64,000 nt of DNA from Takakia lepidozioides (Eukaryota > Plantae > Bryophyta). The stretch spans positions 9,300,001 to 9,364,000 of the forward strand of contig CM060733.1 in assembly GCA_030704615.1 (NCBI GenBank), given 5' to 3'. Positions 250-32,686 of this stretch are shown piece after piece. Position numbers and translations under genes: made by a program. Positions within the stretch are counted from its first letter, which is position 1. Each line of letters starts with the position of its first letter. The notes under the pieces were generated by a model. The model was not told where the DNA came from and ran no database searches. It worked only from the letters and a program-made list of their open reading frames with translations.

Positions 250-1304
250 TATGTTGACACATACCTATATACGTCGCCACATGGAGTCTACATGCCCACA
301 TGTAAACTTTTGTATTCCTGCTTTGGCCTCTTATGTCTCTGCTACAACGAGCTTTGATTTGTGGATGTCTAAAGGAGCCTATGATGTTTTTGCCCTCATC
401 ATTAACTTCTTGTCATTTGTGGGAACCAAAACATGTAACCATAGGCTTGTTTGAAGCCAAAGAAACAATTGGTCAGGCCATGGCCATGAAACTTTAGCAA
501 CTTCTTGCTAAAATCTCTTTGACAAAAAAGATATTGTGTTATGTGAAAGATGAGGGTTCGAATTTGACAAGAATGACACAACTCAAGTCAGTTGTGAGTT
601 GTGATAATTTACAGTTGAATGAACCTTTATCGGGATCATGCTTTGGACATGCTATGTCAAAAGCATATCAATAAGCCACCACGAATGAGAAAGTATGTAC
701 AAGGTTATTTTATGTCTCCATCAAGGCTGCCCAAAGTGACATACAAAAATGCATTACATGGCCTAAGAAGTCAGGTAAGGGCCGTTAGGAATGACAGAAG
801 ACGTGCATAGATTCTGGCATGCAACCTGACGAGCTTAATACTCCCGTAAAAACAATGCAAGTTTGTTATTTCATTTTTTGTTTGTAATATAGTGCATTTG
901 TAATCAGATTTAGGCCTAGTAATTCTTTGTTTACTGTGTACTATACTATTTTTTTATGCTTTGTGACAATCTGATCATCACTATTGATATTATTGTAATC
1001 TGGTCAGAATTATGTTTTGTAATCTGGTCGTTTATTTTCTATAATCTGATCAGATTTCATACAATATTGTGGTCATCAATTGTTCATGATGTTTGCAATT
1101 TGGTCACTCGTTGAATTTTGATGTAGTATTTATGGGGATGGTACATGTTTGCAAGTAGGGTGACGATGTTTGATGGTGCTCTATGTTTCCGAACTGGTGC
1201 TACAGCCGTCAAACACTTGTTTTGCAAGCTCGAGTCCCCCACCGGTAAAACTTGGACTATTGTTGAGGCTGTTGTCAAAACACTATCTCATGTTATCACC
1301 AATT
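250..1304 (+). pseudogene. hAT transposase pseudogene, N-terminal/catalytic part (continues at 31007)
   Basis: Translates with stops and frameshifts to SFDLWMSKG..WEPKHVTIGLFE..YVKDEGSNL..CFGHAMSK..TPVKT [intron ~860-1145] FASRV..RVPTGKTWTIVEAVVKTLSHVIT. These are the hAT DxW, D and CxxH motifs. Confidence 0.85.
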
Positions 1305-1737
1305 AACCCTATTTTAATCAATTCTGGACTTTTGGCTTAAATCCGGACTAAACTTAATATATATTTGTATTAAATTTAATTGAAATATTAATAATATCAT
1401 GGTGTAATGTGTGATTGAACTTTGTGAAATTTCAGGTGATGTTATACTTGTTTCAAAATGTGTCATAGAAGAGGTCCATTTGACATTGAAGTGCTCAATG
1501 TGAAGTAGTAGTATTGAACAATTCATTGAACGTCCACTTGGAAGTCGAATAAAGTAATATTCCATTGCAGGTCATCATGATAAACAAATGGGTCGCATCG
1601 AACATGGGCCAAACTCGTACTGTACCATACTCGATACAACTTGCTAGTAATTTTATTGATTGAATCTTCATATGAAGCACAATGTTCACATACCACGCCA
1701 TTGGAATGAATCATGTTTTGGATGTGACAAGGGCAGT

Positions 1738-2153
1738 AAAATATTAGAATAGCATGAAACATTCGGAAGATGTACTAGGTTTGGGGTGTAACTAGATAGA
1801 AGTGTAATAAGGTTTGGGTTTACAGTAAGGGTAAGGGTTTAGGGTTTGGATTTAGGGTACAAAAAGACAAACAAATATGATGGACTCACACTCAGTAGAA
1901 TTAAGAAATGGTTGAGGAATTTGATATCCTTGTAATCATTCTATCATACCTTATCCAACAAAAGAAAATATTAAAAGAGCATGAAACATTGAGAAGATGT
2001 AACATGGTAGTACAATAAGGTTTGGAGTGTAACTAGGGTAGTACACTAAAGTTATTGGTTTATGGTAAGATTAATGGTTTAGGGGTGATGGTAAAGATAG
2101 GGTTTTCGGTTTGGGTTTAAGAACACTATTGGACAAACAAATATGGAAGACTC
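1738..2153. repeat. Degenerate ~220-bp direct repeat pair containing telomere-like GGGTTT(A) motifs
   Basis: AATATT..AGCATGAAACATT..GAAGATGTA..GGTTTGG.GTGTAACTAG..GGTTTAGGG..GACAAACAAATATG occurs at ~1740-1886 and again at ~1966-2153. Confidence 0.7.
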
Positions 2154-2734
2154 TTGAGGAGCTATAGATAAAACTACCTCATGTCGTCTCAGAGATTTGT
2201 GAGCGCCAAAAATGTCAATCCCATTTATGTCCAGTCAACCTTGACACGCAATTCGGGACACGCAGCAGAGAGGGCGTAGGCGCATGTGCACAACAACCTT
2301 AGGCCCCTCACAATGAGACAGTCTGAAGCTGAGCTGAGCACGAATTTCAATCTCTACTAGTCCAACCGTACTAGAGAAATATCTAGTGATCCTCAGACAA
2401 GGCTTTCTTCACCACCTTACAAAAATTGTTCCCAATGACTACCTCCCTGTCCACATTGTTGCTTGATGTCGGGAAGCTTGGACAAAGTGCCTTGCTCTTT
2501 GTGACTGGCTCCCTTTTTGAGACAGCAGGGTTTTTTTTTTACAGGTGTACTTCACTCACAACCGTTTTTTTTACACTGCGTCCGGGATATCAATGATCGC
2601 CCCAGCCTGAATTTTGCCCACCCTATCAAGCGCTAGTGTTTTTTAACTAGTGCTTTTCAACTCGTCTGCTGAGGGCCCCACTTTCTCCCCTCTACTGGTA
2701 CATGTCAAAATCACTCCAAGAGCCATAGTGTTGG

Positions 2735-4112
2735 AAAACTGCCTTCGCATCCTTGATGCTCCCACATTTGGCATACATGTCCACGAGGGCACTGTCCAGA
2801 ATCACAATCAGGTACAATTCCAGCTTTGACAATGAAACCATGGACCTGATCTTCCCTTTTCCAGAGCTGGCAAGCTTGCCCTTGATGCTCCCACATTTGG
2901 CGTACATGTCCACGAGGGCATTGTTCAGAATCACATCAGGTACAATTCCAGCTTTGACAATGAAACCATGGACCTCTTCCCTTTTCCAGAGCTGCCAGGC
3001 TTGCCCTTCATGCTGACACATTTAGCATACATGTCCACGAGGGCATTGTCCAGAATCACATCAGGTATAATTCCAGCTTTGACAATGAAACCATGGACCT
3101 CTTCCCTTTTCTAGAGCTGCCAGGCTTGCCCTTCATGCTGACACATTTGGCATACATGTCCACGATTGGCATACATGTCCACGAGGGCATTGTCCATAAT
3201 CACAATCAGGTACAATTCCAGCTTTGACAATGAAATCATGGACCTGATCGGAACCTTTTCCAGAGCTGGCAGGCTTGCCATTGATGCTCCCACGTTTGGC
3301 ATACATGTCCACGAGGGCATTGTCCAGAATCACAATCAGGTACAATGCAAGCTTTGACAATGAAACCATAGACCTGATCTTCCATTTTCCAGAGCTGGCA
3401 AAAATTGCCCTTGATGCTCCCACATTTGGCGTACATGTCCACAAGGGCATTGTTCAGAATCACATCAGGTACAATTCCAGCTTTGACAATGAAACCATGG
3501 ACCTCTTCCCTTTTCCAGAGCTGCCAGGCTTGCCCTTCATGCTGACACATTTGGCATACATGTCCACGAGGGCATTGTCCAGAATCACATCAGGTATAAT
3601 TCCAGTTTTGACAATGAAACCATGGACCTCTTCTTTTTTCCAAAGCTGGCAGGCTTGCCCTTGATGCTCCCACATTTGGCATACATGTCCACAAGGGCAT
3701 TGTCCAGAATCACAATCAGGTACAATTCCAGCTTTGACAATGAAACCATGGACCTGATCAGAACCTTTTCCAGAGCTGGCAGGCTTGCCATTGATGCTCC
3801 CACGTTTGGCATACATGTCCACGAGGGCATTGTCCAGAATCACAATCACGTACAATGCAAGCTTTGACAATGAAACCATAGACCTGATCTTCCCTTTCCC
3901 AGAGCTGGCACGCTTGCCCTTCACGCTCCCACATTTGGCATACATGTCCACAAGGGCATTGTCCAGAATCACAATCAGGTACAATTCCAGCTTAGACAAT
4001 GAAACCACGGACTTGATCTTCCCTTTTCCAGAGCTGGCAGGCTTGCCCTTGATGCTCCCACATTTGGTATCCCTAAAGCATGGACCTAATCTTCCGTTTT
4101 TCCAGAGCTGCC
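2735..4112 (-). repeat. Tandem array (~10 units of ~125-130 bp) derived from a PLS-class PPR coding fragment
   Basis: The marker CCAC(G/A)AGGGC recurs at ~2781, 2910, 3035, 3179, 3309, 3439, 3563, 3689, 3819 and 3948. The minus strand encodes [31 protein letters not shown] with frameshifts. Confidence 0.92.
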
Positions 4113-4649
4113 AGACCCTAGCGTTTTTAGGGTTGCTTGCTCCAGATGCGAAGGTTGATCCAACTGCGGGCCTCCCATGCATGTTTGCCCTCTCTCCCGC
4201 TCGCTCGCTCTAAGTCCCAACCCTCTCTCTCTCTCCCTCCCGCTCGCTCTAAGTCTGTTCACGCTACTGTGATGGGCAACTTTTTAAGTTTTTAAACCTT
4301 TTTGTAAACCCTAAAAGCCCCTTTTTGATTTTATTTTATTTTTTATTTTATTTTTTCTTAAAGGAAACCACAAGCCCTTGAGGAGGTGGAAAATTCACCC
4401 GCCTTCATTTATGGGCCATAAGACCTACAGGACGATCAACGTCAAGACATACCGTCTCGAACAATCCCACACACGGGATAAGGGCAGCGGGTTTGAACCC
4501 CAAACCACAAGGGCGACACACTGTGCACTTACCAGCCGATGTGATTTTTTTTAAATCTTTGTTTTTTTTGGGTTTTTTTAATTCATTCTAGTGGTAAAAG
4601 TCTCCGTTTTTTTAAGATATAAATACTCATATATTATATATATAACCAG

Positions 4650-5000
4650 AAAAGCATGTGTCGACACGTGTAGTCATGTAGTGATTCATCCATGTGATGA
4701 TCTGGCATAATGCATTAGAGTGAGAGTCATGAAGTCATATGTCTGTCTTGCAATATGCACACGTCATTCTAGTGTAGCCATGACCGTGACTGGTAGTCAT
4801 ATCTGCCATGCCAATATTCGTGGTCAAACATGTTTGACCTGTGTTGCGCAGAGTCCGAAGCCATGCAGTCGCATATACGCCTTCTCCAGACCTACATTAT
4901 GACTTCAAAAGCATTTTACGACTGCAAATGGCATTTCTGCCACAAATCTGTCATGACTGCGCACCCATGGGAGTCATAAAAGCCGCAATCTGTTGTAGTG
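4650..5000. mobile_element. CACTA terminus 1 with subterminal repeats
   Basis: Ends ...GCCGCAATCTGTTGTAGTG at 5000 (reverse complement CACTACAACAGATTGCGGC), preceded by many GTCATG/CATGAC/ATGACT motifs. It truncates the adjacent transposase. No partner end was seen. Confidence 0.7.
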
Positions 5001-5710
5001 AGTACCTGGAATCAACATTAGGGCCGCAAGCTGGGCAGGCCTTGTATCCCCCGTGTGCGCATCTTGCTAGCAACCCATAAGCTGGAAAGTCGTGGATTGA
5101 CCACATCAAGATGGCCCACATGCGAAATGACTGTTACCCCACTAGGCTACTTCCATCCAATGCCTCCACACCAACTTCCCACAACAATTTCAGCTCATCC
5201 ACAAGGGGCTGCAGATAAACATCTGCATTGTCATTTCCCACAGATTGTGGTCCAGGAATCAATAAAGCCAACATCGTGAAAAATGGCTTAGTACACAGCC
5301 AGGGTGGAAGATTATAGTTTACCAACATGACAGGCCAAGTTGACCATTTGTTTGATTTATCACTGTAAGGATTGACACCATCCCATGCGAGACCCAATCG
5401 CAGATTTCTGGGGTCCGCTGCAAACTCAGGCCATTTTTGGTCAATGTGGGCCCAAGCCTTGCTGTTTGCTGGGTGCCTAACCAAGCCATCTAGACTTCGA
5501 TTCTTAAAGTGCCATGACATTAACTCTGAGATGGATTTGGCTTTATACATTCGAAGCAGCCTTGGAATGATAGGGAAATGTCGAAGGACCTTACGAGGTA
5601 CTGGTGTCTTCGTACCCACCACATAACGACGTGCCTGACATTTTGGACAAACCTCCAAATTCTGAAGCTCCCTTCTGAACAACACACAGCCTTTCGGACA
5701 TGCATATGAA
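5001..5710 (-). pseudogene. CACTA/En-Spm transposase (Transposase_21/TnpD) fragment
   Basis: ACPKGCVLF..CPKCQARRY..RHFPIIPRL..HPANSKAW..PRNLRLGLAWDGVNPY..STWPV..YNLPP..PGP..LQPLVDELKLLW..*..SIHDFPAYG..GYKACPAC; truncated at both ends. Confidence 0.93.
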
Positions 5711-6129
5711 TTTGGGTGGGAAAAGGCTCACTGGAATGTCAACTCCAGTTGCCTGCTTTCTGGCTTGGTCTGGATTGTAATGAGGCCAACAGTTGTGGGG
5801 GTCATACTTCTTCTTCAACAAAGCCAGATAGACAATGCAGCACTAGAGGCACTTGAAGTCCTTACCCCTAAACCCTCCAACATCTCTTTGCCAATTCAAC
5901 TTGTGGACCATGTGCCTTTGTTTTCAGCAATGTGAGTGTTGGTACTCTTATGGTATGCTTGACCTTCATGATGGTATATAAATGTTGCCTCTTTTTCCTT
6001 TTTCATCTTGAACCCATAAACTGAGAATGGTGGTTTTGACTTGGTGATTGTCTCTCACCAATCCATGGACCAAGAAGAAGAACAACATGAACGGTAGTGA
6101 CAAGCCACTTTGTCTAACTTCATTTTCAT

Positions 6130-6350
6130 GAGAGAGAGAGAGAGAGATTGTACTCATAAGACGTTGTTTGCCGTAGCCTTGTGGACATTGACCCCGCGCC
6201 CAGTTTGAGCGGGAACAAAAGGGACAGAACCTACCTCTGTCAGGGGCTGACGTTGGTAGTAAGACTTACCTTCATATATAGAATTAATTCGGGTTTTCCA
6301 GATATCCTCTAGAAATCCTTCTTGTATAGATTGACAATGACGCCCTGTCA
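6130..6350 (-). mobile_element. LINE 3'-end fragment ending in (CT)n
   Basis: Minus strand reads ..GCTACGGCAAACAACGTCTTATGAGTACAATCTCTCTC and encodes GFLEDIWKTRIN..; near-identical to 42790-42970. Confidence 0.75.
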
Positions 6351-7784
6351 CCAGCGAAAGGGGATTGTTTCAGTCTTCTAGATCAGGTTAAAGAGGAGAA
6401 CTAGGGATTGAATTCTGTCTTGAAGTTGATGGATTGAACCGTCTCTGCCAATGCCTGATTTATGTTGGCAACCCGCATGGGATCGCCACCGTGCTTGATA
6501 AGCTCGTTGACAATACCATCAGGTCCACCAGCTTTATATCCATTTATATGTTCAATTGCTTCCACAATCTCAGAAGGACTAATGGGAGCGTTATAAGCCA
6601 TTGAAATATACTCCAGTTCATCAGGGCTATTTTGCATCATAGGAACAGTTTTTCCAACTGTGTCCCTCCATTCAGTAGAAGACCCCTCACTGTTAGACCT
6701 AGAAGTTATGCCAAGGATACTGTAGTGAGTTTCAAAGGTTTTGACAATGTCAACCGATGAAGTCACCACTGCACCTTTAGTAGTCTTCAGCGCTTGTACT
6801 TGCTGACCGTTTTTCGGCTTGTACAAATGTTGAAGGGCCAACCAGAATTTCTTGTCATTACCACCATGGTGGTTTGAGTTTATTTCACTGTATAACTTGT
6901 CCCAGTATAATTTCTTCTGAGACCTAACAAGTTGTTTGATATCTTTACGGAGCTGGTAGTACCTCGCCCACAATTCTCTGTTGGTTTCCAAATCGCAGCA
7001 CTCTTTATAGAGGGCTCGTCTCTCAGCTATCTTGAGTTTAATCTCATTGGTCCACCAATTAACAGCTCTACCACAGACAATTAGTTTCATCCCAATGATC
7101 TTGTCAACCACGGAGGAAACGAAACTCTCCCAAGAGTCCCCTGCTCTTTAGACTTCATTTCTTGCGTTATCAAAGCGAGACTGAAGTTCTTGGAGCGATT
7201 GGACAAAATGAGGGAGAGCCTCTTGCAAGGGCTGGACATACTCAGCCTTGACCTCCTCATTATGGAGTTTTTCTATGCGCCACTTCCGAATCGAATGTTT
7301 CACATATCTCTTGGTGTTGGGAAAACACCTTTTGATCTCATTCCAAACCAGGAAATGGTCAGAGGTACCAATATCAGTTCTGTCGATCAACACATTGGCA
7401 CACTGGGGGAACAAATTTTTGTCCATTATGATATAATCCACAATGGAACGTTCCCCAGTTTGGGATTTCTCACGAGTCCACTGCACTTGGTCACCTCTTG
7501 TCCTGTTATTCAAGGTCAAAAGCTGAAGATTTTCTAGACAGTTAATTAACCGTCTGCCATTAGAATTCAGTTCGTCCTCACCAAAAGGTCCAATGATATC
7601 GTCCCGATGGAGCCCTTTGCCCACCCGGGCATTGAAGTCACCCAATAGCACCACCTGACCTTTGGCAAGGAACGAAGCACAGTCCAGCTTTACATCTTCG
7701 AAGGCTTTGTCTGCATCAGCACAAAGCATCCCCTCTGTGGGCATGTAAACACAACCCACAAAGAGGTCCTTTGTCCTCGAGACT

Positions 7785-7787
<3 letters not shown>
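6351..7787 (-). mobile_element. LINE ORF2 fragment (APE endonuclease to start of RT)
   Basis: VYMP..VVLLGDFNARVG..N.NGRRL..TR..SIVDYII..SDHFLVW (endonuclease); WWTNEIK..KKFW..KAGGPDGIVNELIK (pre-RT). Disrupted. Confidence 0.92.
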
Positions 7788-7831
<44 letters not shown>

Positions 7832-8960
7832 CTTATCATAGCCTTGTGGCCACAGACCTTGCCCGTGCCCAGCAGAACAAGAGGGAACAGACATGAGGGG
7901 CTCACTCCAGTAGTAGGACTTACCGTGTTATAAACATTAGTTCAGGCTTTCCAGATTCCTTTTAGAAAGCCCTTCACACAAGCATCAATATGTTGTATGT
8001 GGGCTACCAAGCACCGAGACCCCAACAGGGCCACCGCTTTAGACTCAGCCTTGACATATTGAAAGTTGGTGAACAGAGGTGCAGGGACTATGTTCTTGAT
8101 GGTCTTGAAGAGGATCGCTCTCTGATGAGAATACCCCGGACTTGTATCAGAAAATGGACATTGTCTTCAGGCCACCCACACCAGTGAGCATTGACAATCT
8201 CCCTTTCCGCTCTGCATCTGTTTATTGTTCAAAGGTAGACTCCCCATCCTGAGGTTAAATTTTCAGTCTAGTGCCAAGGGTAGGTCTGCCCTTCAGATCA
8301 TCCTCAAAGTCATCACCCATGTCACAAACTGGAAACGAGTTCAGGGAAGTTTATGCCTAACATTGTTTTGTTCGGACATTCTTCATGCTTTTGACATGGC
8401 CTTAGACACTTCAGCCTCCACGTCAGATTCATCTAGCAGGGTGAGTTCTTCCTTCCTAATATTCAGGTATTTATCATAGGGTCGCTGGTATGAGGCATGC
8501 GATTCAGCTGACTGTACCATCTGACCTTGAACTCATCATGTTGAGAGCTCAAGGCTGGTACTCCAAACTTGCCCTGAGCAGCCACGTCAGTTGTTCTACA
8601 GCTTCTAGGGTCAGGGGAAAGATATGGAGGATGGTTCACAACCTGCATGCGAACACCAAAGCTTGTGTTGTGGTCAATAGCGAGAAGTCTAATTTCTTTG
8701 ACATTGACCAAGGTGTAGCTCAAGGTTGTACCCTCTCCCCGCTGCTCTTCAATGTTTTCGTTTATCAGCCCCTTAAAAATTAGGAAAGCAAGAGATTTGG
8801 GTTACAGGTGGGTGATGCCGCCATACCAGCACTTATGAAGAGATCAGGCCTTATCAGGCCTTGGAGTACACATCTGCCGTGTGGGTTGGCCAACTCCAAT
8901 CATGCTAAAACTTTAGAATCCATTCAGCTTTTTGGTGCTCAAAGAGAGCATGTCAGCGCG
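7788..8960. mobile_element. 5'-inverted LINE copy (3' part on - strand 7788-~8600; RT part on + strand ~8600-8960)
   Basis: (GA)n at 7788-7828 is followed by the LINE 3' end on the minus strand up to RTTDVAAQG. The plus strand then encodes VRGKIWRMV..GVAQGCTLSPLLFNVF..LESIQL. Confidence 0.8.
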
Positions 8961-9261
8961 TGCACCATAAGATGTCAAGGAAGGAAACCTTTGTAGAAGG
9001 AAGGTGTCGTTCTAGGACAGAGGTTTCCTTAGAGGTTTCTTTCTTTTTTCCTTCCTTGAATAGGCCAGCTCAGGGACATGGTTGACACAACCCCCAGGAA
9101 GCCTGCCTCACCTTCATGGAAAACACTTCCAGACTCCAAATCAACCTCAAGATGGGTGCTTATTATCCTACAGAACAGTTTGCAAACTGTGGTAAGAAGT
9201 GTAATGCTACGGTAGTTCCTAGGCTGTCATCTGTCACCTCAAATTGACACTGACACCCTCT

Positions 9262-9535
9262 CTCCAGCGAAAGGGTATCATTTCAGTCTTCCAAATAAGG
9301 TCAAAGAGGAGTGCAAGGGCATCTACCATATGATCACACCAGGCTTGACAATCGTATCAGACACACCAACTTTATAGCCCTTTAGATGTTCTATTGCTTC
9401 AGCAATCACAGAAGAACTAATGGGCACGTTGTACCCCTTTGTGATGTACTCCAGTTTTTCAGGGTTGTCTTGGATTGTAGACAGTCATTTCCACTGTACC
9501 CTTCCATTCTTTAGAAGACTCCTCACTGTTATAGG
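9262..9535 (-). mobile_element. LINE fragment homologous to 6351-6700
   Basis: CCAGCGAAAGGG..TTTCAGTCTTC..AAAGAGGAG and ..TGTACTCCAGTT..CCTTCCATTC..CTCACTGTT match the 6351-6700 segment. Confidence 0.75.
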
Positions 9536-9654
9536 TAGGTCTGACTGACAGGGTCTTCTTGCATAGGCCTTTGGGCTTTGCTTACCCACTAGGTTTGCCA
9601 TCCCTAGTAGTATGGTGGTATTGTTTCTCATGTTTATGTTGAGCAATGTGTGCA

Positions 9655-12600
9655 GAGTTCAGTAAAAAAAAGGAAGGGAATTGCAGGGAAGGATGCGAAC
9701 GAGCATAAGTCTCTTACTCCAGCAAAGTGTGCACCAACTATTGCGCCAACTGTTGTGATGAGTGGCGCGGTTGTTCCAACTTACGAAAAACCAGCCCCGC
9801 CCACTCCACAGACTGCCGTTCCAGCTCCCTTGTATCCACCAGTATCGGCTCCTCCCTCGTATCCGCTTATGTACCCGCAGTATCCTGCCATGTCAGGGTA
9901 TAATTTGCATGAACACATGCCGTATCCTCACTATCAACCTCCAAACAATGATCCTCAGTGCCAGAATTACAATTCTTTTGCTCCACCTGCAGGCGCTCCA
10001 ATGCATGATCCTAGTCAAGGTGGGTATTCCATTTACAACCATTATGGAATGCATCCCCATAGTATGTATCCTCCTCGGCCTATGTACAACCAACCTACTT
10101 CCTCCCTCTATCCTACCAGCCCTGCAAGACCACACCAGGGGCAGGTCCAGTATGGTGGCCACCAACCTTCAGGATCCAACTACAGTGGAGTACAACAGCC
10201 GGCACCTTCGAGCTTCACTGCACCGCGGCCACCTCTTTATCCAACATCTCCAGGTACACCTAATACCCTGAAAGGGAAAGGCATTCTGAAACAGACCGAG
10301 GATGCATTTGCTCTGCATCATCCTGTGGGGTGGGAGACAACAGTCCAGCCCCAACAGAGTGAAGGTGGTAACATGCAAGGTACTGCTGAAACCTTGCAGG
10401 GAGTGGACATCAGGTGTGACTCCTATAGAACGCAAAAATGCTTTAAGGAGGGAAAGAAGGGCACTTGCAAAAGATCTGAGAGACCAGGCTGCTCAGAATG
10501 TGGCTGTAGGGAGGAGGAAATTTTTCATTTCTTGTGATGAACTTGGAAACCCTGAAGGTCCTACTCGGAACCAGTGGATGACAGCTCTGCGAGGGCAGTG
10601 TCAACGTTTGTTGGACTGGTCATTGTATGCTCAGGATCAACCATTACACTTAATTGAAAAGATCATGGAGATCTTGGCTTCAGATTGGGAATACGGACCT
10701 CCTGGTCTTAACATAAAGGCTATTACAAAAACAATTTGCGGGCAGCTCAAGTACCAACGAAATAAGCTGTTCAAAAATTACTATAGTGTGGGGCTGCCCA
10801 AACCCCATCATGTGCCACACAAGACATGGGCACAACTAGTTGTTAGTTGGGGTTCCACTGATTTCAAGAAATTCCAGGCAAAGGGTGTCAAGGCGCGGGG
10901 ATGTGTGAAGAATACATCTCGATCGGGTCGCACTGGAATCAGCGGTGTTGTAGCACGACTAGTATACTTCTCTTACAACATAGGAAGTTCCCACATTGTT
11001 TTGCATTGACAAACTTTATGTGTTGGGTTTTTTTGGCTGGAGCTCAGAGTCTATTCCTATATGGATGGAATTAGTACTTTTTGCTACTACTTGGGGGCCT
11101 TCTCAGAGTTGGGCGCCAGCAAGAAACTAAGCACTCTTATTGAGGGGGAGTCATTGACGCTATCCTAGATAATTCTTTACTGTTGGCAGTGTGCTATGCT
11201 AGTCATTTACACTTGCAAGTTTGTTGCAATCACAGGAGAAGGAGACTGGACGTACACCAAGTTTGCAGGAGATCGCCGGTAGCGCCAAGAGTGACAAAGG
11301 CTACGGGTCGGGGTGTACAGGCAGTGCAGCCACAACGGTCTATAAACTCAGTACCAATTCTGGGGTGAATTACATATTCATGATTTCCATGCCATTGCTA
11401 GTTGCCGTTTGGTTCTCTTTTCTTACTAGTTCATCAGTCAGTGTAGTGAATTGTTACTTTGGAGGTGTTCTATGTGATGGGGCAGGGAATTGGTTCACTA
11501 GCAGCTCGCCTCGATGCTATGGAAAACAAACAAGTGCAGATGGAAGCCAGCTCCAAGGCAGCTTTGGAAGCAGTCCAAGTCCAACTAGAGGCAGCAGCTG
11601 CATTCAACATTGCGCTCGCAACTAAACTTGGCATGAATGTGCCTGATTCATAGCCTACAGGTCCACCATGCACCACCTTTGCGCCACAGACAACAAATGA
11701 GACTATTTCTCATGTTATGGGCTCACCACTCAACCTGTTCAAGGCAGTTTCTTCACCGCCACCAAAGCCAAACACAATAGGCTCATTGTTTGGGCTTTCA
11801 GAAATGGAGGGGGATGATGATATGGAGGGTTGGTCTGAAGGTGAACTCAATCCATCCCCCCATATTGTTGAGGCAACTGCAAAGTGTTCATCGGTTTTGT
11901 TGTCCCCTACACCAGTAGCACTGCCGGCATATGTACTACCCTCTCAATATGCCTGTGAGGTCTCCATGAATTTGCAGAGTGCCCCACAGAAAGGTGTGTC
12001 TTTTGTACATGATTATCATGTACAAGTTGTGGGTAATTGCCCTTCGGCAACTGAGAGGCAGAAACACATCCTTATACTTGACTTGAATGGATTGCTATGT
12101 GAGAGCAGACTACGAACAAGGGAATACCTAGAGTCCACTGTCACCTCCAGACCTGGGTGTCAGGAGTTTCTGGACCGATGCCTTCAGATTTTTGATGTAG
12201 GTGTATGGTCTTCCATGTCATTGAGTAATGTCCTTCCAGTTGTGAAAGCTTTGTTTCGTGGGAAGCAACCAAAGATGGTGCTTCACCAAGACTATTGTGA
12301 CCAGCCTGTGGGAATGGTGGACCCTTTCAATCCTTCTAAAACTGTCATGTACAAGAACTTATGTAAGTTTTGGAAGGACTACAGCCATTACAATCCAACC
12401 AATACTTTGCTGGTGGACGATTCCCCACTCACTTGCTTACCCAACCCTGCAAATAATTGCATCTTCCCGTATCCATGGAAGTTGAGGGATCAGCCAAACT
12501 GCAAGAGGCTTATGAAAGAATTACTGCCTTGGTTAGAGGGTGTATCCAAGGCTGCACACATCCCTGAGTATGTGTCAGGGCACCCATACAGATATGGGCA

Positions 12601-22129: not shown

Positions 22130-25100
22130 GGAACTTGTGCAAGATGTAAATGACGACAATCTTAAGAAGTACTACACTGACTGGCCCTCAAAGATTATAT
22201 GGTCAAAGGATCTGATGAGGCTCGTGAAGCTATCTAAGCTCCTAAACGACCCGAATAAGGCGCATAGATTTGACACAACATTTCTCGAGAAAGTTGCACA
22301 TGCCCGTAATTTCTTCGAGCTGAGGGGGAGGCCGAAAAAGTACAACGATCACACAACGAAGGCGGAGACTAGACAATGGAAGGTAAATGATTCATTGTGT
22401 TTTCCGTTCCTTTTGCTAGAGAACCAAAATATTCTCAAGCTTGGATTTAATGTGACAAACGGAGACCGCATTACGAAGCAGGAGACAGTACAAAAATAGC
22501 TTCATAAGGGAGGGTGCTACAATGAACGAGCGGAATGGTTCAGCATTCGGAAATTTGACATGATGGGGTCTTTTGTAATGTGTCTTGTTTGGTAATGAGG
22601 TGCTTGTCCAGTTCTTATTTTCCCAATCTATTTATGTTCTCCACCTGTAACAGTTCCGCAAAAATACTTGAAACATCATATGCTCATGAAAACGTGATGT
22701 TGCGGAGAACGCTTCCAAAACTTTTCATGCTCATTGGGTTTTTCAAGGATTTTCTAGGTACACTCTTGGAACTGTTCCTGGTGGAGAACATGAACAGATT
22801 GGACAAATTTGACTTGGAGGAGCACCGCATTCCGAAGCAGGAGACACTACAGAAAGAGCTTCAAATTACAATGCACAACAAGATGGACGGAGATGAATTC
22901 ACAATCGAATCATCACTTGGTGTATAGTATAATTGACAAGATAATTGTGACTATTGTTTCATCTCAAGATTAATATCAAATATTGAATGAAATTTCTAAC
23001 TTTGGCCCTGATATTTTTTGTAGGAATTTATGCAAGCATGTCAACTCATACTGGAGATGAGTAGCGTGAAGGAGGCCATGGTTCTGGTTCTCTGTGACGA
23101 AGACGTATGGAACCTGTGGGAGGAGGTTTTCAAACAGTGGGAACAAGGGAAGCTTATTGATATTTTCGGGATTCAGTGCAAGGGTGAACAGCTACCGCTG
23201 AATAAAACCGCTATCGCGAAACTGCAAGGACTTAATAGCAGGCAGTTGAAAAGAGTGGCGGAGAAAATCCTGAACAGAGACATTTGCATTCGGGGAATGA
23301 AATTCAAGGGCGCGGACAAATCCAGAAACACAATGAGCGCGTATATTGACCAAATGAAATTGCGACGGTTTATTATCGACGATGTAATAGAAGTCTTAGG
23401 GTGGTCTCGGAGGAGCAAACAGAACCCGGAACCGTATACCAAACAGGAGTGGCGTGATGTTAAAAAAAAATACAACTTCAACAAAGCTGAGTTTGAAACA
23501 TTTCGAGATAGGCTTGGGAACGACTACATTGTTAGCAAACAGAAGATGAATATGGAGACGCAGCCAATGACTGCTGTCTTCAAGAAGTATGTCTTGTCGT
23601 GCAAGTAGACCTTCGAGGATAACCAGAATGCCCTGGCGATTCTACGCACGAGCTTCAGGTCCCATTACACACAGCTCGGGGGGAACCAGAAATTTGCTGA
23701 CGCCGGATCACGGTTGGGACTTGCACCAAAGATTTGGTTCGACGACATATCCATGGTGTTCGTCAATACAGTTTGTGATGATGACTCTGTTGTCTTCGAG
23801 ACAAAGGACTACTCAAATATCTTGGATGCTTTTGTGGCTCGGCAGCTCATGTCCAGTGCTTTTGTGTTTTTCTCCACACAAGAATCATCGGGAAATCTTG
23901 TGTCATACATCCGGAATGGCCCTGGATCAAAATCGTTTATTATCCGACAGGGTTATTACATTCCCGACGAGTTTGAATCATCTTACAAGAGCTGCACGAC
24001 TATATTCTCCCGGACGGTCCTCTGCCTCGACTATGTATTTCCGGCAACAGCTGAGGAGATGGTGAATCCGGATGACCACATTCAAACTGTTTTGTTATCG
24101 CCGGACCCAATTAATCCCGTTATCCAAGGACCAGATGTAGACCCGACCTCGCAGGAGATGGAGTGCAAGACTTACAATCATGAGCTGAGGCCGGACACCT
24201 ACGATCACCTGGTTTTTTTTTTTTTGCAGGGACGGGATGTCTTGTGTGAACATTTTCGGAGGACTGGCAATGACATACGTTATGCCTGTAAGCGGATTCT
24301 GCATCTTGGAATTGTCTGTGTTTTCAGTTTTCCGGATTTAACTCTCGTATTATTGACGTTGTCGGAAAAGCGTGTTTAACCTGTGTCTGATTGTTCCATT
24401 TTCTTAACCTCCACTGGGCAGTGGAGGTTCATGTTATTGGAGTTGTGGGTGTTTTGGGTGTTTGTTATTCTGCAGATTGGTGTGTTTGGTAGTTGTCTCA
24501 AAAGAAAGCCTAACCCTTTCAATCTATCGATGGTTGGTGTTCGTCGGATTTATTTTGATATCATTGTTTGGTTTCATTGCAGGAAAGAAATATTTGTGTG
24601 CTCGACATAAACTTTGTAACAAAAAAGAAATTTTGTAGAAGCAAGGTGGAGGCCTATTTCAGGACCCTCCAGATTGACAATCATACTATCGCAGGAGACG
24701 GAGATGACGGAGACTCACTGCAGGATGACGAAGTGGACGAAGAAGATGATGACGAAGGACACGACAAGGATCAGGACGAGGAAATGGAGGAGAAACAAGA
24801 AGAGGAGGAGGAGGAGAAAGACGAAGATGAGAACATGGAAATCGTCAACGGAGTCCAGGGGGCAGATGCGGCTAATGTTGGAAAGGGAAAGAGAGGGCCA
24901 GGAAATTTCACGGTTGGATAATCTAGGTAGTACTCCAAATACCCAAGAACGCGTTGCGCCACAAGATGTACACAATCTGGACAGCTCTTCCTCCAGTTCC
25001 GATAACACCACAAATAAGAATCCAGCTTCTCCAGGCGGACAAGAAGCGACATCGACGGAGTTAGTTGAAACCCTCGGTCAAGGGTTCACACATGTGGAAG

Positions 25101-28100
25101 GTGACGAGCCATTGATTATGTCACCGGACCCCGTTAACAATCGTCGTGAGCTGGTGTCCCAGAATGTCACCCAGGATCTGGTTCTGGATGTAGGTAACAA
25201 CTGACAATTAGTGAAAGTTTATTCGTACATACTTCTGAATACAATATGACAATATTGTAACTATACATACTTGTGAGTGGAATAATCCAAATGTTATTTC
25301 CATATGACAATATTGTAATTATATATAATCCCAATGTATTTCCCATATCCGTCTTTCTGGACTTCCGAATAAAACATATTTTCACCCGGATACATATTTC
25401 CGTTCGCACACCTTTGTGGACAGCCACTAACCGATTTGAATAACTTTTCTTGTAGATCCAAGAATCCAATTCGAAGGAAATGACACACACAAGAAAAAGA
25501 TCAAAGGACACTCAAACGGTGAAGAGACACGTTGATCTGACAGTGAGGGCCAGGTCACTTGAGCCGGTTCCGCAAGTAACCTCCACTATCCAGTCGACGT
25601 TGCCATCAAGGGATGCAGGGATTGAGTCGGAGAATCCTCCTACTCGCGTGGAACGAGAAGAGACAGAGCACCACAATCACGTAACAACATATCCCGATTC
25701 AGGTAAAACATTGGTTTTTTTCTTATTACTCTTATTATTGGTCTTTCAGTCTAATCTTCGGTATTGCTCAATTCGATAATTTTGTCAGATCATTTTGGAC
25801 CACCATAGTCGTCATCCGTGGGATTTTTCATTAATTTCCTGTAGATTCGTGAGACGACGTCTGAGGAGATCAAACACACGAGGACCGACTCTATCGACAC
25901 TAAGACGGAGAAGAGAAGAATGGATCGAACAATTACTGTCGCTCTATCTGAGCCGGTCATACAAATTACCTCCACTGGACAGTCGAGGTTGCCATCTGGC
26001 TCCACAGAGAAGGACGATAACATTTGACCTAGAGATGGGAAAGAGGAGGAGCAGCCTCCCCAGGGATCTCAGCAGCCCACTCCAAAAACGGTAATGATTT
26101 CAACTCCATTCTTCCGTTTGTCTACTTTGGGATTTTACTCAAATTGAAATTAATAATGAACTTTTATGTTATTCCACAGGACAACATGCATTACCCTCCA
26201 ATCGACTATTCCCTTTCTGTCAATCCAAACGATGTGCACTCCCTTCCTTGGGGACCGAACGGATGCCGGCCAAGATACTACGTCCTGGTTCTGGACATCG
26301 GTTACCTTTGTGAGGTTTTCCTAAAGGATGGAAAGAAAACACCTCCTGCCACCTAGCCTTGTATCTCCGCAGGGAAATTCAAGTTAGGTACGCGAAACGG
26401 TCTTGACGAATTCGTTAAGTGGGCCGTCAAAAAGTTTTCCGTTTGTTTTTGGAACATTGGACCTGAAATAAACGTCGAGACTATCGCCAAGGCCGTGTTC
26501 AGGAAGTACTATTCCCAGGTCAGAACTTACAGCAGTGAGAATTCCGTCATGCATAGATCGACATTCAACGAAAAATGGCCCAAAGCTCCCAAAAATCCCA
26601 TCTACTTTAAACGTCTTCACGACATTTTTGCTGAGGAAGACCCGACGGCTTACAAATCCAATACTCTCCTCATCGACACTGTAGACAATATGTACAAGTC
26701 CTATTTGAACCCGTTAGGACATACCATCTTCCTTCCAAAATATAAGGCGCGCGTGGACCCTGACAAAGATAAATTTCTACTGGAAGAGCTCAAGCCTCAC
26801 CTTAACATGTTCCGGTTATCGGGGATGGATGTCATGCCGTTCAACGACCTACATCCTTTCGACGTTTCGAAGGATTTCTTCGAGGACGACCCAACGGTTA
26901 AATTTCTTAGAGACTTTGATTATAGGTGGCAGAAGTTTCTTAGCAATCTCGAGTTGCGCCGCTGCATTGGGACATAAAATATTTTAACTGAGTTTGGTGA
27001 ACCTCGGCTGTCCAGTGGACGTTCTTGTTCACTTTCATGGTGTCGGTTTTTCCAATGCATTGTATTGTTCCCTTTTATCATCCTAAGTATGAATGACTCT
27101 CTGGCAGATTGGAGCACCTGTTTCTCCTCCTGTGCAAGGGTTGCGTTTGATTATTTTTGATGTGAATGGAGTCTTGTGCAAAATCTTGAAACACCAAAAT
27201 AGCTACAATGTCCCCCGGTTTTCAGAATCGGACTACAGAATTCCAGCTCTTGTCGGATTCCGACTTGTCTTTAGACGGGAGAAATATCGCGAAGTGTGGA
27301 CAGAGTTGCACAAACACTACCGGTTAGGGATTTGGAGCTCTATGATGTACAAGAACTTGCAGCCCATCCTGGATTTTTTGCTTCGTGGTCTACCTCAACC
27401 GGCCTTCGTTATGTCTCAAGAGGATTGTATTTCATGCCCTACTTCGGTTCACCCTCAATTCAAATTAGGATTGGACCCTCCTCATTTGTTTTTGAAGCCA
27501 CTGGTCAAGGTCTGGCAGAGATTTGGTGGGCAATACACCAAGAGTAACACTTTGCTCATTGACGACACCGCCATGAAGTGTGTATTGAACCCGCCTCATG
27601 TCTTGTTCTCAAACCGTTCCAGACCGTTGAGACTGATGGTTGCTATCTTCTTAAGGTTCTTCAGACCTATTTGCTTGGAATGAGGAAATATCCTACTGTT
27701 TCAAGCTATCTTAGGAAGAAAATGATAGGGTTGAGTCTTTTTCCCAATGTTTCAAACGATCCCAAGTTTAGCCCACTCTGGGATTTTATTGAGGACAACG
27801 GTTTTAAGAGTCTCAAATATGATGCCTCAAAATAAATTATTTTTGATCAATCCCATCTCACTCGAGCTATTGAATATCCTCATGGTTTCTCTTTTTCATT
27901 TCCTTGTAATCACACACGTGAAAGATATGGTACTCTCATTTTAACTCATTTTCAGTTGAATTCTTGACGCATATTCCGGGCAATCCCAAGACTCTGATAT
28001 AGACCTTCATACGGGGACAAAACTATATCTAGTGACCTCCACTGTTCAGTGGAGGTTCGCATTCGTGCATTCCCGGATTTATGATTATGTCTCTTTGGCA

Positions 28101-30460
28101 GGTTCAAGGAGATGCTGACAACGTCATCGGTTCCTCAAGTCCCCTAAAGGAACCCTCCGGATCAGCTGTGAGTCGGAGTATTGAAGGCTTTCCGAGGGTT
28201 CACGATGGTGCTCAAATTGAGGATGGATCCTCTGTCAGACCCTTGTCCTCTCGGGAAGCAGACGATACTCTTCTCCTCTCGGGTCTTCCTGGGGGTAAAG
28301 TCCAAGGTCCAGGTGAAGAACACAAATATCCCGGAGACTTTATCGACCTTTCCGAACATTCCTCACCCTCCCTGTTCAGTACGCAGGGTCTGGTCTATCC
28401 AACCGTCGGGGACTCAGCTACGGCTCCGCTGCACCTGCTTCCGTCTCTTCCTCGCATATCTCCCCAGCACGAGGGTTGGATAGCCCAAATCCGCAAGAGT
28501 CAGGTGACTTAAACTCATTTCTCACTCCTTGCTCATTTTCCTAGTTTCACTTAGTTTGGGGTCTGATATTCATCTGTAGCTCCAGGTAAGAAAATCTGCA
28601 GATTATGACCTTCCTGTCAAACGACGTCTGCATTGGAATGTAGTTCCGAGGTAAATTATTCTTTCGTTGCGTTTTCATTCCATCCAGGATGTCGAGTGCT
28701 CAAGGGACAATTTTATGTGCTTGCCTGTTGTTGCCCCTCCACTTCTCCCCTCGTTCAATGACAACACATCTCCAACATCGACACAGCGTGACCCTGAACT
28801 GCTCGCACAATGTTCTGCACCAAAGAGGCGAAAAACACCCCCCGAACCATTTCTTTCCTCTGCAGGGAATCATTCCAAAAGACAAAAGGCTGACAAGAAA
28901 AAAAGAGCGGACTCCAAACACATGAGGACTCCCTCGGATGTTGTGGCGCCTCGTCAATCCAAGCCCGCGGGAATCCACTGTTCTTCTGCAAGACATTCCA
29001 ATAAGGCTTCAATGGTACATTTCAAAACAATTTCTCTACTTTCGTTTGCAGTTTTTTTTTTTTTTTTTTTTTTTTTTGTAATTTCTATACAAGCGAGTAT
29101 GGAGCCGCATAACTTCTTGAATGCGCCTCCCGACAAGGTGCGTCCACTAACCTCCACTTGACAGCCGACGTTCATCTTTTCGTGATCTCGAACTCTTCGA
29201 TATATGGTCTACTCTTGGTCCTTTACAGTAGTCCATTGTCGGGATACTTATGTGTCCGAAAACGTAGAGGTCACTCTGAAACTAAGGAACACTACATTGT
29301 GTTGTTTCTGATGGCGGGAACACTTAAATTGCGCAGGTTGGTATCGTCCATCAACCTTCATTTGCAACATCAAGGAAACGGATGCTGTTAATATTGAGTG
29401 TCAACGGTCTCCTTTGCTACCGGCCACCTCCAACCGGCGGTGAATTGTTTAAGGAGAGATTTCGTTTCAGGAAAGTTACAGTTCATGTTCCCGAAAGACC
29501 TTTTGTGGTTCCCCGGCCGGAGTCTTGGAGTTTCTCAACCTTGTGTTCATGCATTTTCACGTGGCGATCTGGTCATGTGTTGAAAGACATGTTCTTTGTA
29601 GGATGTTCGAGTGTTTAGTTCCTACGAAAATTGCGAAGAAATTTTGCTTCATCTGGTCAGCTGAGGATTGCAAAGACACTACCGGTTATATCATGCCTGG
29701 GATGAAATATCTCGTTAAGGATATTCGCACTGTTCTTGCCAAGTACCCTGGTACACCCTTTGCAACGCAGGGACAAATACTCATTGTTGATGATGAGCTA
29801 TCAAAGGGCCTCCGAAACCCACCAAATATTGGATTCTTCCTTATTTCATACAAGCCATCATCAAAGAGATTGGTTGACCAGGATGATATGACAAAAGCTG
29901 TGTGGCCATATATATTGAAAATGGCTGCAGCTTCAACAGTTGTAGATTACATCAGCGAGAACCCTGCCAAGTGTTCTCGTAAGCCTATTGGTCGTGACCA
30001 TGCCTATTGGGCTTGGTATGGAAGATATGTTGATCCTCGTGTTTGGATCCCACAACAAAAAGAACCTGATTACCTTGGTATGTACTTATCTCACTGTTTG
30101 TTGTTTATGGAGAATTTGATCTTGAAAGTGTCTTCTACTTGCACTTTTACTTTATCATTTTTTCTACAAATGTTCCACATTTCAGCTGACATTTGTCATA
30201 TGAAAAATTGTTTTGCCCAGTCACATTCAAGGAGCGAATTCGAAAAGAAGAATAAGAGCTTTGTGATTGGCAAGAATGGCGGGCTTCCCGGCAGGCTTCA
30301 AGGGCATCAAGAGATTCAACAAGTAGAGTTCCAAGTAACATTTCGGATGATAATGTTACTACTAGGTTCGAGTTCTCTGAAAGTATTTCCGTTTCATCTG
30401 GTGCGGAGACCGTTGCAAGTGGTTGTGGTAACCGGAGGCGTCTTCGAACACATGCCTTGA
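22130..30460 (+). pseudogene. Large multi-exon transposon cargo gene: helical region, MTase-like segment, D/E tract, three FCP1/NIF-like HAD domains
   Basis: A series of + ORFs is bounded by plausible GT/AG sites. HAD1 ~26270-26900: VLVLDIGYL..RNGLDEFV..FSVCFW..NTLLID. HAD2 ~27140-27830: LIIFDVNGVL..LGIWSS..NTLLIDDT..NP. HAD3 ~29380-30080: LLILSVNGLL..RP..EFL..VAIWS..LIVDDE..NP. There are in-frame stops and frameshifts. Confidence 0.75.
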
Positions 30461-31006
30461 CTGCGAGCCGTTTGGGAGGAGGCTCTGTAATATTAATGGG
30501 TTAGCGTAAGCCGTTGTATGGCTTCGAGCCGCTGGATAACATTAAGTCCAACGGATGTACAGTTGACGTTACATTAGGTCTGACTGCAACGCCAAAGTTG
30601 CAATCTCTAATAAAATATGAATGTTTATCATCAATGTATGCAGACACATTCTTCCATATCATCCTCTTCATCACATGCCATGATTGTTCTATGTTTGGTT
30701 TTGTATGTCATCTGATATGACAACCATTTTCTGCAAAAAGTTTTACATATCTGACCTCACATCATTGTGTAATTTATTGCATCCTCCCATTTTTTTCGTG
30801 AACGTCAACTTGGCAGTGGATGTTCTTCTAAAACCACAATACATACTTATATTGTCTCCAAAAAATGTTTGGAGGATTATATTGTGTATAAAATAACCAA
30901 AATAATCATATATATCGCTTCATTTCAATAATAAATTTTTGTTTATTCATATTTCTCATATTATTTCTGGACCAAACAAAAGTCCAGAATTAGTTAAAAT
31001 AGTGTT

Positions 31007-32686
31007 AATTGTGTAGTCAACCAAAGTTATGGCCATTAGTTGCTCACCGACGCTTTAACTGTGGCAATAACTGTTGCAATTCCAGCGAGAGATTGCAAAG
31101 ATGATGATTGAAGACAGGTTTGTCGAAGCCCCACAAACTAATGAGTTTAACAGTGAGTTGGTTAATTTAGTGTTGGAATGAAAAAAGAAGTGATTGCAGG
31201 TGTTTTGTCACATTTCTTGGCTTTCATGCATAAGTATGACAAGTTAAAAGCCCATACTATGCTTGTTTTGATGCTTGATCTTTGCTTCAAAAATATGGCT
31301 TTGGTATGAAATCTTTACATCTTTTGTTTTTCACATGTTTCCAAGCTTTGGTACCATCTAACCCCTTGGATAGTGATTATGGTCGAGTACATGGCAACAT
31401 TCATGATTTATTCAAGACCTCCGAAACAACGGCTGAAACCACCAAAGACATTGTCAGCCGAGAGTTGTCTTTGTTTCGATCGTATTTGCAATTGATCGAG
31501 AGAATTGCACTAATCCCTTGACCTGGTGGAGGTCTCATGAACTACAGTTTTCAACTATTGGTCATCTGGCTCGCCAGATATTGGACATTGTTGGTAGCCA
31601 AATTGAGACAGAACGAATATTTTCTATTGCTGGAATCCTCACTGCATTACGTCGTTATCGTTTGCAAATAAACAATCTTGACAAAATGATCTTTGATGCC
31701 AAAAATTGGCCTAATGATCTGAGAGAGGGTTGCTAGAGTTTCAAAGCGTTGGCTGATATGAAGGAGTTTGAGGAGGAAAAGCAGCTTGACAAGGAATTTG
31801 CATATGATAAAATTGAATGTGGGGAATTTCCAAAGGGTGATGAGACTTTCTAGTGTTGTGCTAACATGGTAAAATAAATTTCACTTCTTCTTACCTTTAC
31901 ACTGTTATTTAGCAATCCATCCATTTATATCAAAGTCATATGTGTTGATTGGGTCTTCTACTGGTTTGTCTTTACAGTACTTTGAAGCGACAAGAAAGGC
32001 TCTACAATGACAATCCATGCCATGGGATTATAGTAGCTGCCTAAAGTGTGTAGGGTATACAAAAATCAGTGCATTTGAAGGTATTGATGTATGTGTGTAT
32101 CATTGTATGGGTTCAACGGTCTGAAAATATAGACAACAAAATTTTGTGATGGTTGTAATTGTGTGAATGTTGTAGTATTTCTTGAGATCATTGATTAGTA
32201 CCCTACATAATGCGAAAATTTATATGAAACCAATATGTTAACTAAGATGTCCATTATTGATCATGTGGACGACCCAATTTCAAGGGCTAACCATCTCGCA
32301 TGGTTGGTCAATTCATGTTTGGCATTTATTTTTACTTTTAAAATTATTTATTTATCTTTTCATCATTTTAATGTGCAAATTTTTATTTTATAAATAGTTC
32401 ATATACATGACTGCAATATTACCGCTTTCAAGGACCGCCAATTTTACCGGTTGTGAAGTATATTGAACTTCCATAACCGGTTCAAGAAACCGTCCTTGCA
32501 AAGGTCTTTAATAACCGGAATTAGACTTAATGGGGTTTTTTGAAACTATCAAAGAATTGCCTTCGGTAGGTTATTTAATTTTTTATTTTGTCCATGTAAC
32601 CGCCTCCGGAGGATCTAAGGAAGGGCCAATGAGCAAAGAACGTGCACCCTAGGAGCTCACAAAAATCTGATAACCGCCCAACACTG
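31007..32686 (+). mobile_element. hAT element, 3' part: transposase C-terminus/dimerisation domain and right terminus
   Basis: The frame resumes NCVVNQSYGH*LLTDAL..MLDL..WWRSHELQFSTIGHLARQILDIVGSQIETERIFSIAG (31518-31736). AACCG subterminal repeats lie at 32420-32680, and the end ...AACCGCCCAACACTG (reverse complement CAGTGTTGGGCGGTT) is at 32686. Confidence 0.85.

Follow-up and report, generated by a model that had tools for sequence, protein, structure and literature searches.

Within the 64,000-nt stretch of the Takakia lepidozioides genome analysed here (contig CM060733.1, positions 9,300,001 to 9,364,000 of the forward strand; referred to as the window), positions 1305–31006 are probably a single, old and inactive copy of a Sola1-type DNA transposon, which sits in the coding region of a hAT gene of this plant-lineage genome and is composed of its own and of foreign DNA. 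The transposase and most of the accessory open reading frames (ORFs) are now pseudogenes. The copy is thus a well-delimited, unusually large, dead element of a known but rarely described kind. To our knowledge, Sola is among the least studied superfamilies of cut-and-paste transposons; we know of no transposase structure or activity assay, and its plant members are barely described.

The limits of the element are given by two terminal inverted repeats, each flanked by the same four nucleotides:

1301–1304, no strand: left copy of the target-site duplication AATT
1305–1334, plus strand: left terminal inverted repeat, 30 nt
30977–31006, minus strand: right terminal inverted repeat, 30 nt
31007–31010, no strand: right copy of the target-site duplication AATT

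The left repeat agrees with the reverse complement of the right one at 27 of 30 positions, the mismatches being positions 4, 14 and 15, and the length between the AATT copies is 29,702 bp. An inverted-repeat search called the same pair as 35 nt, 91% complementary and 29,642 nt apart; this call is longer than the 30-nt ends because it includes the palindromic AATT and one further C/G, and beyond about 35 nt the left and right arms are unrelated. A 26-nt terminal pattern has exactly two matches in the 64 kb, namely the two ends, with 0.00 expected from shuffled sequence. An earlier reading made from the sequence alone (the sequence-only reading) had proposed two 30-bp repeats about 29.7 kb apart and flanked by AATT, that is, one element with exact ends inside a hAT gene. 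Ends, flanks and interrupted target are all seen.

The interrupted target is represented on both sides of the element:

131–1304, plus strand: left part of the hAT gene, decayed and in pieces in several frames, the last of which (1103–1303) is in frame 2
31011–31736, plus strand: right part of the hAT gene, including the dimerisation domain at 31518–31733

The identity of the gene follows from the hAT C-terminal dimerisation domain on the right flank (PF05699, 31518–31733, E = 6e-7), where an LDPRFK-like motif was also read by eye in the ORF 31178–31309. On the left flank, hAT-like motifs occur in the ORF 131–454 and in the piece 1103–1303; a Pfam search with these left-flank pieces gave no match, and their assignment was made by eye and from the right flank. 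Taking out positions 1305–31010, that is, the element and one AATT, removes 29,706 bp (3 × 9902). The left piece, which ends in ...EAVVKTLSHVITN, then continues as ...VITN/CVVNQSYGH (the slash marks the joint) and stays in frame 2, which the following hAT-like stretches of the right flank (31040–31100 and 31178–31309) also use. The empty site would be expected to read ...ACCAATTGTG.... Since the hAT frame is kept, the AATT reading is preferred over a duplication of 2 bp, of 0 bp or of TTAA. The proposal that the deletion restores the hAT gene holds for the frame but not for an open gene: a stop lies 9 codons past the joint, several others precede 31178, and the interrupted hAT is a pseudogene.

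The element's own transposase gene lies between these ends:

15463–18626, minus strand: Sola1-type (DUF7869, PF25273) transposase pseudogene

Its ORF 16417–16836 on the minus strand matches Pfam DUF7869 (PF25273) with E = 5e-27 and carries ..LQMDNSAKDNKN.. and ..GHTHEDID..; the signature motifs quoted in the sequence-only reading are present in this ORF. At E ≤ 1e-3, an exhaustive HMMER search returned 2,414 relatives. The residues that are invariant across 54 aligned full-length homologues (numbered as in homologue P0127) are D352, D492-N493, N498-K499-N500, G527-H528-T529-H530, D532 and D534. Of the named relatives looked up, that of the liverwort Riccia sorocarpa is the closest; Chara has one too. 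In an AlphaFold model of the Riccia homologue (mean pLDDT 67; core 85–93), the predicted core has the RNase H-like order b1-b2-b3-a1-b4-a2-b5, in which strand 1 ends at D352 and strand 4 at D492, and strand 5 is directly followed by D532/D534. Foldseek gave weak matches only, the best local ones being RNase H1 and the RNase H domain of the reverse transcriptase (RT) of HIV, the clade in which Majorek et al. 2014 placed the Sola transposases. The model is consistent with a transposase with three catalytic aspartates (DDD) on an RNase H-like core.

The copy in the window is dead, with at least three frameshifts and one in-frame stop. Full-length relatives align with it colinearly (tblastn) through frames −3, −1, −2, −1 and −2. 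At the junctions near 16805, 16440 and 15700 the alignment keeps every query residue, so that these are true frameshifts, and two relatives (L001 and L003, introduced below) keep their frame at most of the points where the window copy shifts. The in-frame stop is at 17616–17618. A gap of about 200 nt at 17230–17427 holds a palindrome (17274–17299) that recurs throughout the element.

Related elements were found on long contigs of the ENA assembly ERZ25073694 (loci L001, L002, L003 and L006) and in Riccia sorocarpa (locus L005, CM100795.1, gene KAL3697196.1). Their transposases share 45–60% of amino acids with the window copy in ERZ25073694 and 33–36% in Riccia, and at the DNA level their similarity to the window is essentially nil. 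In L001–L003, a repeat related to the window termini (..CAYATTTAACTAYTTTTGGACT) lies 0.9–1.4 kb beyond the 3' end of the transposase gene. Locus L002 is complete: it measures about 10.8 kb and has 27-nt terminal repeats that are 96% complementary and a 4-bp duplication, CAAG. The cores of the terminal repeats (..TATTT(T)AA..) are equally far from the tip in L002 and in the window, in the register that matches AATT. These loci indicate that the DUF7869 transposase family is paired with such termini and with 4-bp duplications. While the sequence-only reading could not decide between 4, 2 and 0 bp in the window, 4 bp is now favoured by the hAT frame and by the register of L002, although AATT is still palindromic and seen in one copy.

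Three further observations concern these loci. Directly outside the right end of L002, a second fragment resembling a terminal repeat (12910–12945, ..CATATTTAACTAC..) suggests that this element inserted beside or into an older relative. On a liverwort chromosome, the Riccia locus has two annotated DUF7869 genes in tandem (10001–12391 and 15198–19044), separated by about 3 kb; no terminal repeats were identified for them. Moreover, a 642-amino acid ORF without a Pfam domain is shared by L001 (5278–7287) and L006 (17033–19180) with 69–83% amino acid identity; it lies near DUF7869 transposases in differing position and orientation and is probably another repeat family.

The palindrome provides an independent marker:

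1528–1548, no strand: subterminal palindrome copy with the exact half-site GAACGTCCACT, 224 bp inside the left end
15190–30825, no strand: 18 of the 19 half-sites, mostly paired as the 24-nt palindrome AACCTCCACTGnnCAGTGGAGGTT

The interior of the element has 10 copies of the 24-nt palindrome at no more than three mismatches, with 0 expected. Its half-site, GAAC[C/G]TCCACT with at most one mismatch, occurs 19 times in the window against 1.95 expected and 7 in the most extreme shuffle. All 19 half-sites are inside the element: one at 1528, two at 30800–30825, which is about 200 bp inside the right end, and the others at 15190–29158. The 18 sites of the range 15190–30825 are near 15190, 17274, 18692, 18902, 19037, 21041, 21941, 24405, 25577, 25967, 27000, 28034, 29148 and 30800. 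No half-site is found in 1539–15189 or in the 34 kb of the window outside the element. The ERZ25073694 elements have the same layout with a different palindrome, ATCGGGGGATCCCCCGAT, which is restricted to the elements and lies close to their termini and to either side of the transposase gene (spanning 8126–14139 in L001, 2213–12823 in L002 and 1804–6021 in L003). The same non-homologous gap of the transposase gene holds a palindrome in the window (17274–17299), in L001 (9614) and in L003 (3709). Each related transposon lineage has its own palindrome of 18–24 nt. The palindrome is taken here as a marker of the element's own DNA; it might serve as a protein-binding or regulatory site. Helitron-type 3' hairpins were considered as an explanation and rejected, as no CTRR follows the palindromes.

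Since the half-sites are confined to 1528 and 15190–30825, and the GC profile shifts near 2150 (the approximate left edge of the foreign DNA), the element's own DNA is estimated at about 16–17 kb, made up of about 1305–2150 (0.85 kb) and about 15.1–31.0 kb. The remaining 13 kb or so (about 2.2–15.1 kb), between the 3' end of the transposase gene and the left terminus, is foreign. The distance from the transposase 3' end to the terminus is 14 kb in the window versus about 1 kb in the relatives, which fits about 13 kb of added DNA. A native size of about 17 kb had already been proposed, and the absence of half-sites from 1539–15189 now gives this figure an independent basis. The description as a giant element needs more care: the total of 29.7 kb is real but is largely secondary growth.

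The foreign block is a mosaic of repeats and of a two-gene module:

2751–4067, no strand: tandem repeat, period about 125–130 bp, about 10 copies, 85–88% matches
5137–5685, minus strand: CACTA/En-Spm transposase fragment (PF02992, E = 3e-47, profile positions 1–113 of 213)
6404–7894, minus strand: fragment of a long interspersed nuclear element (LINE), with an endonuclease ORF at 7151–7894 (PF14529, E = 2e-8) and an adjoining ORF at 6404–7111
8521–9535, plus strand: retroelement fragment of about 1 kb, with a weak RT match at 8490–8780 and an end that resembles 6330–6702
9650–11006, plus strand: first ORF of the module (ORF458), with a 17-bp deletion near 10400 in the window and 458 amino acids in its intact counterpart L004
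11474–13012, plus strand: second ORF of the module (NIF1), FCP1/NIF-like (PF03031, E = 2.5e-17), 463 amino acids in L004

The CACTA fragment corresponds to the first half only of Transposase_21, and LINE pieces are present in both orientations within the block. LINE-related repeats at 6143–8957 are 71–90% identical, partly in inverted orientation, to 42788–44965, which lies outside the element and 35 kb away. The tandem repeat has long ORFs on both strands; its minus-strand peptide (..NALVDMYAKCGSIKG..) recalls the pentatricopeptide-repeat motif, and a Pfam search with the peptide gave no match. An 18-nt inverted pair (1.6–5.2 kb versus 13.0–15.3 kb) was considered as the edges of the block and rejected as weak.

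The 5-kb module with ORF458 and NIF1, at about 8.2–13.6 kb, has an intact counterpart. Locus L004, a Logan contig of run SRR15431198 that covers window positions 9536–13120, is 97.4% identical to the module over its positions 1–3630, and both of its ORFs are intact. In the window, NIF1 has an in-frame stop at 11651–11653 and a 1-bp insertion near 12840 in addition to the deletion in ORF458. Pfam and PDB sequence searches found no known domain in ORF458. Between window and L004, the ratio of non-synonymous to synonymous divergence (dN/dS) is 0.75 for ORF458 and 0.40 for NIF1, in both cases from very few changes (8 synonymous and 11 non-synonymous for NIF1). The retroelement piece 8521–9535 is missing from L004, whose first 30 nt join window positions 8491–8520 to 9536, and it is apparently an insertion in the window copy; taken alone, this junction of 8520 to 9536 is weak evidence, as the 30-nt overlap equals k−1 of the Logan assembler.

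With a profile built from NIF1 homologues, four NIF-like ORFs were found, all inside the element and all on the plus strand, and none in the other 34 kb; the list below ends with further plus-strand ORF pieces:

11654–13012, plus strand: NIF1 (profile match), in the foreign block
26357–26974, plus strand: NIF2 (own NIF profile, E = 2e-10), without the N-terminal DxNG part
27093–27680, plus strand: NIF3 (PF03031, E = 7e-7), with a DVNG motif and an ATG 70 bp after a palindrome
29328–30457, plus strand: NIF4, in two frames (29328–29615 and 29453–30457), its N-terminal motif decayed to LSVNG
21123–26094, plus strand: further ORF pieces, divergent from the transposase gene (e.g., 22137–22499, 23030–23608, 23714–24379 and an acidic one at 24568–25204)

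NIF2–4 lie in tandem in the DNA marked by half-sites, upstream of and divergent from the transposase gene, with palindromes between them; NIF4 changes frame inside its domain. The sequence-only reading had described a divergent multi-exon cargo gene here. A divergent plus-strand block of 9 kb does exist, but it consists of ORF pieces that include three tandem, decayed NIF ORFs. For the plus-strand ORFs at 21.1–26.1 kb, Pfam and PDB sequence searches found no relatives; the same searches gave no match for the interior of L002, and Rfam and tRNA scans found no RNA genes.

In place of the catalytic DxDx(T/V) motif of FCP1/NIF phosphatases, the NIF ORFs have DLNG or DVNG, where Asn replaces the second Asp. 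The same change is present in all 38 of the 38 plant and algal NIF homologues retrieved (P0169–P0206), so it is a conserved trait of a subfamily and not decay. The NIF genes therefore go back to a host subfamily that is conserved and whose active site is unusual. Among named proteins, NIF1 is closest to FCP1-homology proteins of angiosperms (33–36% identity). NIF2–4 are 23–29% identical to NIF1; in a quick tree, which was uninformative, they stand on very long branches of 6–10 substitutions per site. The contig of one of the homologues, P0201, belongs to a compact protist genome, in which the gene is an ordinary one.

The NIF-like genes are most likely host-derived passengers. A possible but unlikely alternative is that they are regular accessory genes of the Sola1 lineage, kept as helpful, for example through RNA polymerase II C-terminal domain phosphorylation or in silencing. 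It would account for the confinement of all four ORFs to the element and for the tandem arrangement of three of them among the palindromes, as well as for the dN/dS of 0.40 between NIF1 and its 97% identical, intact twin. Furthermore, L001 has a degraded NIF in divergent orientation to a related transposase gene, 7 kb upstream of it. Yet that NIF copy lies 6 kb outside the palindrome-marked part of L001, and within 20 kb no terminal repeat turned up on its far side (with L001 extended by 10 kb). The complete element L002 has no NIF, and none is within reach in L003, L005 or L006. The dN/dS of NIF1 is derived from the few changes given above, NIF2–4 are partly truncated or frameshifted besides being highly diverged, and a literature search found no paper that links NIF genes to transposons. 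The pairing of ends, transposase and cargo that the sequence-only reading expected in other copies accordingly recurs for a homologous transposase and related termini (L001–L003), but not for the NIF cargo.

An extended form of this alternative appears quite unlikely: a plant Sola1 lineage would have grown to 15–20 kb with fast-evolving NIF "DLNG" pseudo-phosphatase genes, and with the lineage-specific 24-bp palindrome, placed between the genes, near both ends and in the transposase gene; together these would act as a regulatory or binding system that aids expression or escape from silencing. If true, the accessory genes of this cut-and-paste transposon would form a genuine programme and not be chance passengers.

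The superfamily assignment was made by eye, against the labelled cores that Majorek et al. 2014 print in their supplement. There, the core of Sola1-1_AP reads ..FDLEKVLTTP.. and ..SDNCGGQNRN.., followed by ..FLERGHT.. 34 residues after that D; in another aphid Sola1, the blocks are ..SDCCPGQNKN.. and ..FMVPGHS... The corresponding blocks of the window transposase are ..HDKMDHRKTAVP.., ..MDNSAKDNKN.. and ..FLMVGHT..; the spacing in the DUF7869 family is 35 residues, and variants such as DNCTGANKN are present. The cores of Sola2 (TDGCAGQYKNC, ATSHG) and Sola3 (SDNASSYHGN, CRGKD) given in the same work fit less well than the labelled Sola1 core. At the motif level, then, the name Sola1-like is supported, as is the Sola1-type motif pattern put forward in the sequence-only reading. 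Duplications of the form AWWT are a hallmark of Sola1 (PMC3845634), which the AATT of this single copy fits. The moss Physcomitrella is listed with Sola1 (PMC9033089), and curated Sola1 elements are known in bivalves (PMC10294476). Bivalves also have DUF7869 proteins.

That the DUF7869 family is not Sola1, but a separate, unnamed DDD superfamily or one that targets TTAA (piggyBac, Kolobok), is improbable. The link between DUF7869 and Sola1 is indeed at the motif level only, and no DUF7869 protein among the matches listed has a Sola name. The termini can also be read in a piggyBac-like manner as TTAA/CCCTA....TAGTG/TTAA (slashes mark the ends of the element), with TTAA at 1303–1306 and 31005–31008 and an element that would start with CCC. 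This TTAA reading was rejected: it takes out 29,702 bp, shifts the hAT frame and makes a TAA at the joint, and in L002 a direct repeat (CAAG) is found only in the register that matches AATT. The element has no piggyBac or Kolobok transposase domain, and D-N-x4-N-K/R-N with F-L-x-x-G-H-T about 35 residues apart matches the labelled Sola1, not Sola2 or Sola3. Likewise, CACTA/En-Spm was rejected as the owner of the outer ends: these are not CACTA, the flanks are of 4 bp, and Transposase_21 is just an internal fragment.

That the terminal repeats are the ends of two separate elements or a chance inverted pair, with ordinary repeat-rich DNA between them, can scarcely be upheld: the interior is a mosaic of unrelated repeats seen in one copy only, but the terminal pattern occurs just at the two ends, the 4-bp flanks are identical, the hAT frame continues from flank to flank, and homologous repeats flank homologous transposases elsewhere. 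Half-sites of the same kind occur about 200 bp from the tip at either end and around the transposase gene, and at no other place in the 64 kb.

Several points weigh against a single Sola1-type element with a foreign block. The edges of the block are approximate, being set on the left by the change in GC near 2150 and on the right by the half-site at 15190, the first of its series, and no insertion junctions with duplications of their own were found for the foreign pieces. As AATT is palindromic, the length of the duplication depends on the frame argument and on the register common to L002. Frame restoration alone is weak evidence, expected in 1 of 3 cases by chance, and the argument is worth only about that much because hAT itself is a pseudogene with stops past the joint. 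Sola membership is an unscored motif agreement with one labelled core; among the 120 matches listed for a profile of 15 full-length DUF7869 proteins, none is labelled Sola and none is the aphid Sola1 protein of Majorek et al., the named ones coming from bivalves, amphioxus, sea urchin, Chara, Riccia and others. The duplication of L002, CAAG, has 4 bp but is not of the AWWT form. In addition, no second copy of this transposon family was found among the metagenome contigs of the Joint Genome Institute (JGI) or in the protein collection: exact-pattern scans of the JGI contigs with the terminal repeat and with the palindrome gave 0 matches each, an exact look-up of ten window ORFs in the protein collection found none of them, and NIF4, which was picked for its position 550 bp from the right end, yielded no relatives in a homology search.

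For the preferred reading of one Sola1-type copy, the history of the locus can be sketched from the known behaviour of the class. The DDD transposase would bind the 30-bp terminal inverted repeats and probably also the palindromic sites just inside the ends. Excision and reinsertion would proceed via a 4-nt staggered cut at A-W-W-T, the repair of which would produce the AATT duplication. The copy would have landed in this way in the hAT coding region, and the foreign block may have entered after, or apart from, the element's own genes.

The insertion as such is unambiguous, with both ends, the duplication and the interrupted target gene at hand. In plant-lineage DNA, it connects Pfam DUF7869 with termini of the Sola1 type and with 4-bp duplications. 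Two features stand out: a palindrome that is specific to the lineage, marks the element's own DNA and has counterparts in related elements, and a cluster of FCP1/NIF-like genes. As a dead relic, it changes no general view. Two further observations concern the window as a whole: ORFs of at least 120 amino acids number 29 in positions 1–33000 versus 6 in the remaining 31 kb, and a direct repeat at 61850–61988 and 62472–62610 is 88% identical.

Among known systems, the Sola1 group (Bao et al. 2009; Sola1-1_AP of the pea aphid) is the closest. It shares with the window element the terminal inverted repeats, a 4-bp duplication that fits AWWT, a predicted RNase H-like DDD transposase and, at the motif level, the blocks D..(E/D)(K/Q)..T.P, D-N-C/S-x3-N-K/R-N and F-L-x-x-G-H-T at matching spacing. 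It differs in size: with about 16–17 kb of its own DNA and 29.7 kb in total, the window element is much larger than described Sola1 elements (about 2.8 kb in bee and a mean of 5.4 kb in bivalves; PMC3845634, PMC10294476), as the sequence-only reading had claimed. Moreover, neither a 9-kb divergent ORF block with NIF-like genes nor an internal palindrome in about 15 copies is found in the Sola descriptions read.

The DUF7869 elements of ERZ25073694 and the Riccia gene share the homologous transposase. In L001–L003, the related terminal repeat is in the same register, and a palindrome specific to the lineage lies close to the ends and to the transposase gene, in L001 and L003 also in the same gene gap; L002 adds the 4-bp duplication. 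The ERZ25073694 elements differ in being about 10 kb long, in the transposase 3' end lying about 1 kb from the terminus, in their other palindrome (ATCGGGGGATCCCCCGAT) and in the lack of a NIF inside the complete L002.

In plants, Pack-MULEs and CACTA elements carry captured gene fragments. The window element resembles these gene-carrying DNA transposons in being a cut-and-paste element with host-like coding sequence, here the FCP1/NIF "DLNG" genes. It differs from them in belonging to another superfamily and in having whole, highly diverged tandem paralogues instead of recent exon fragments.

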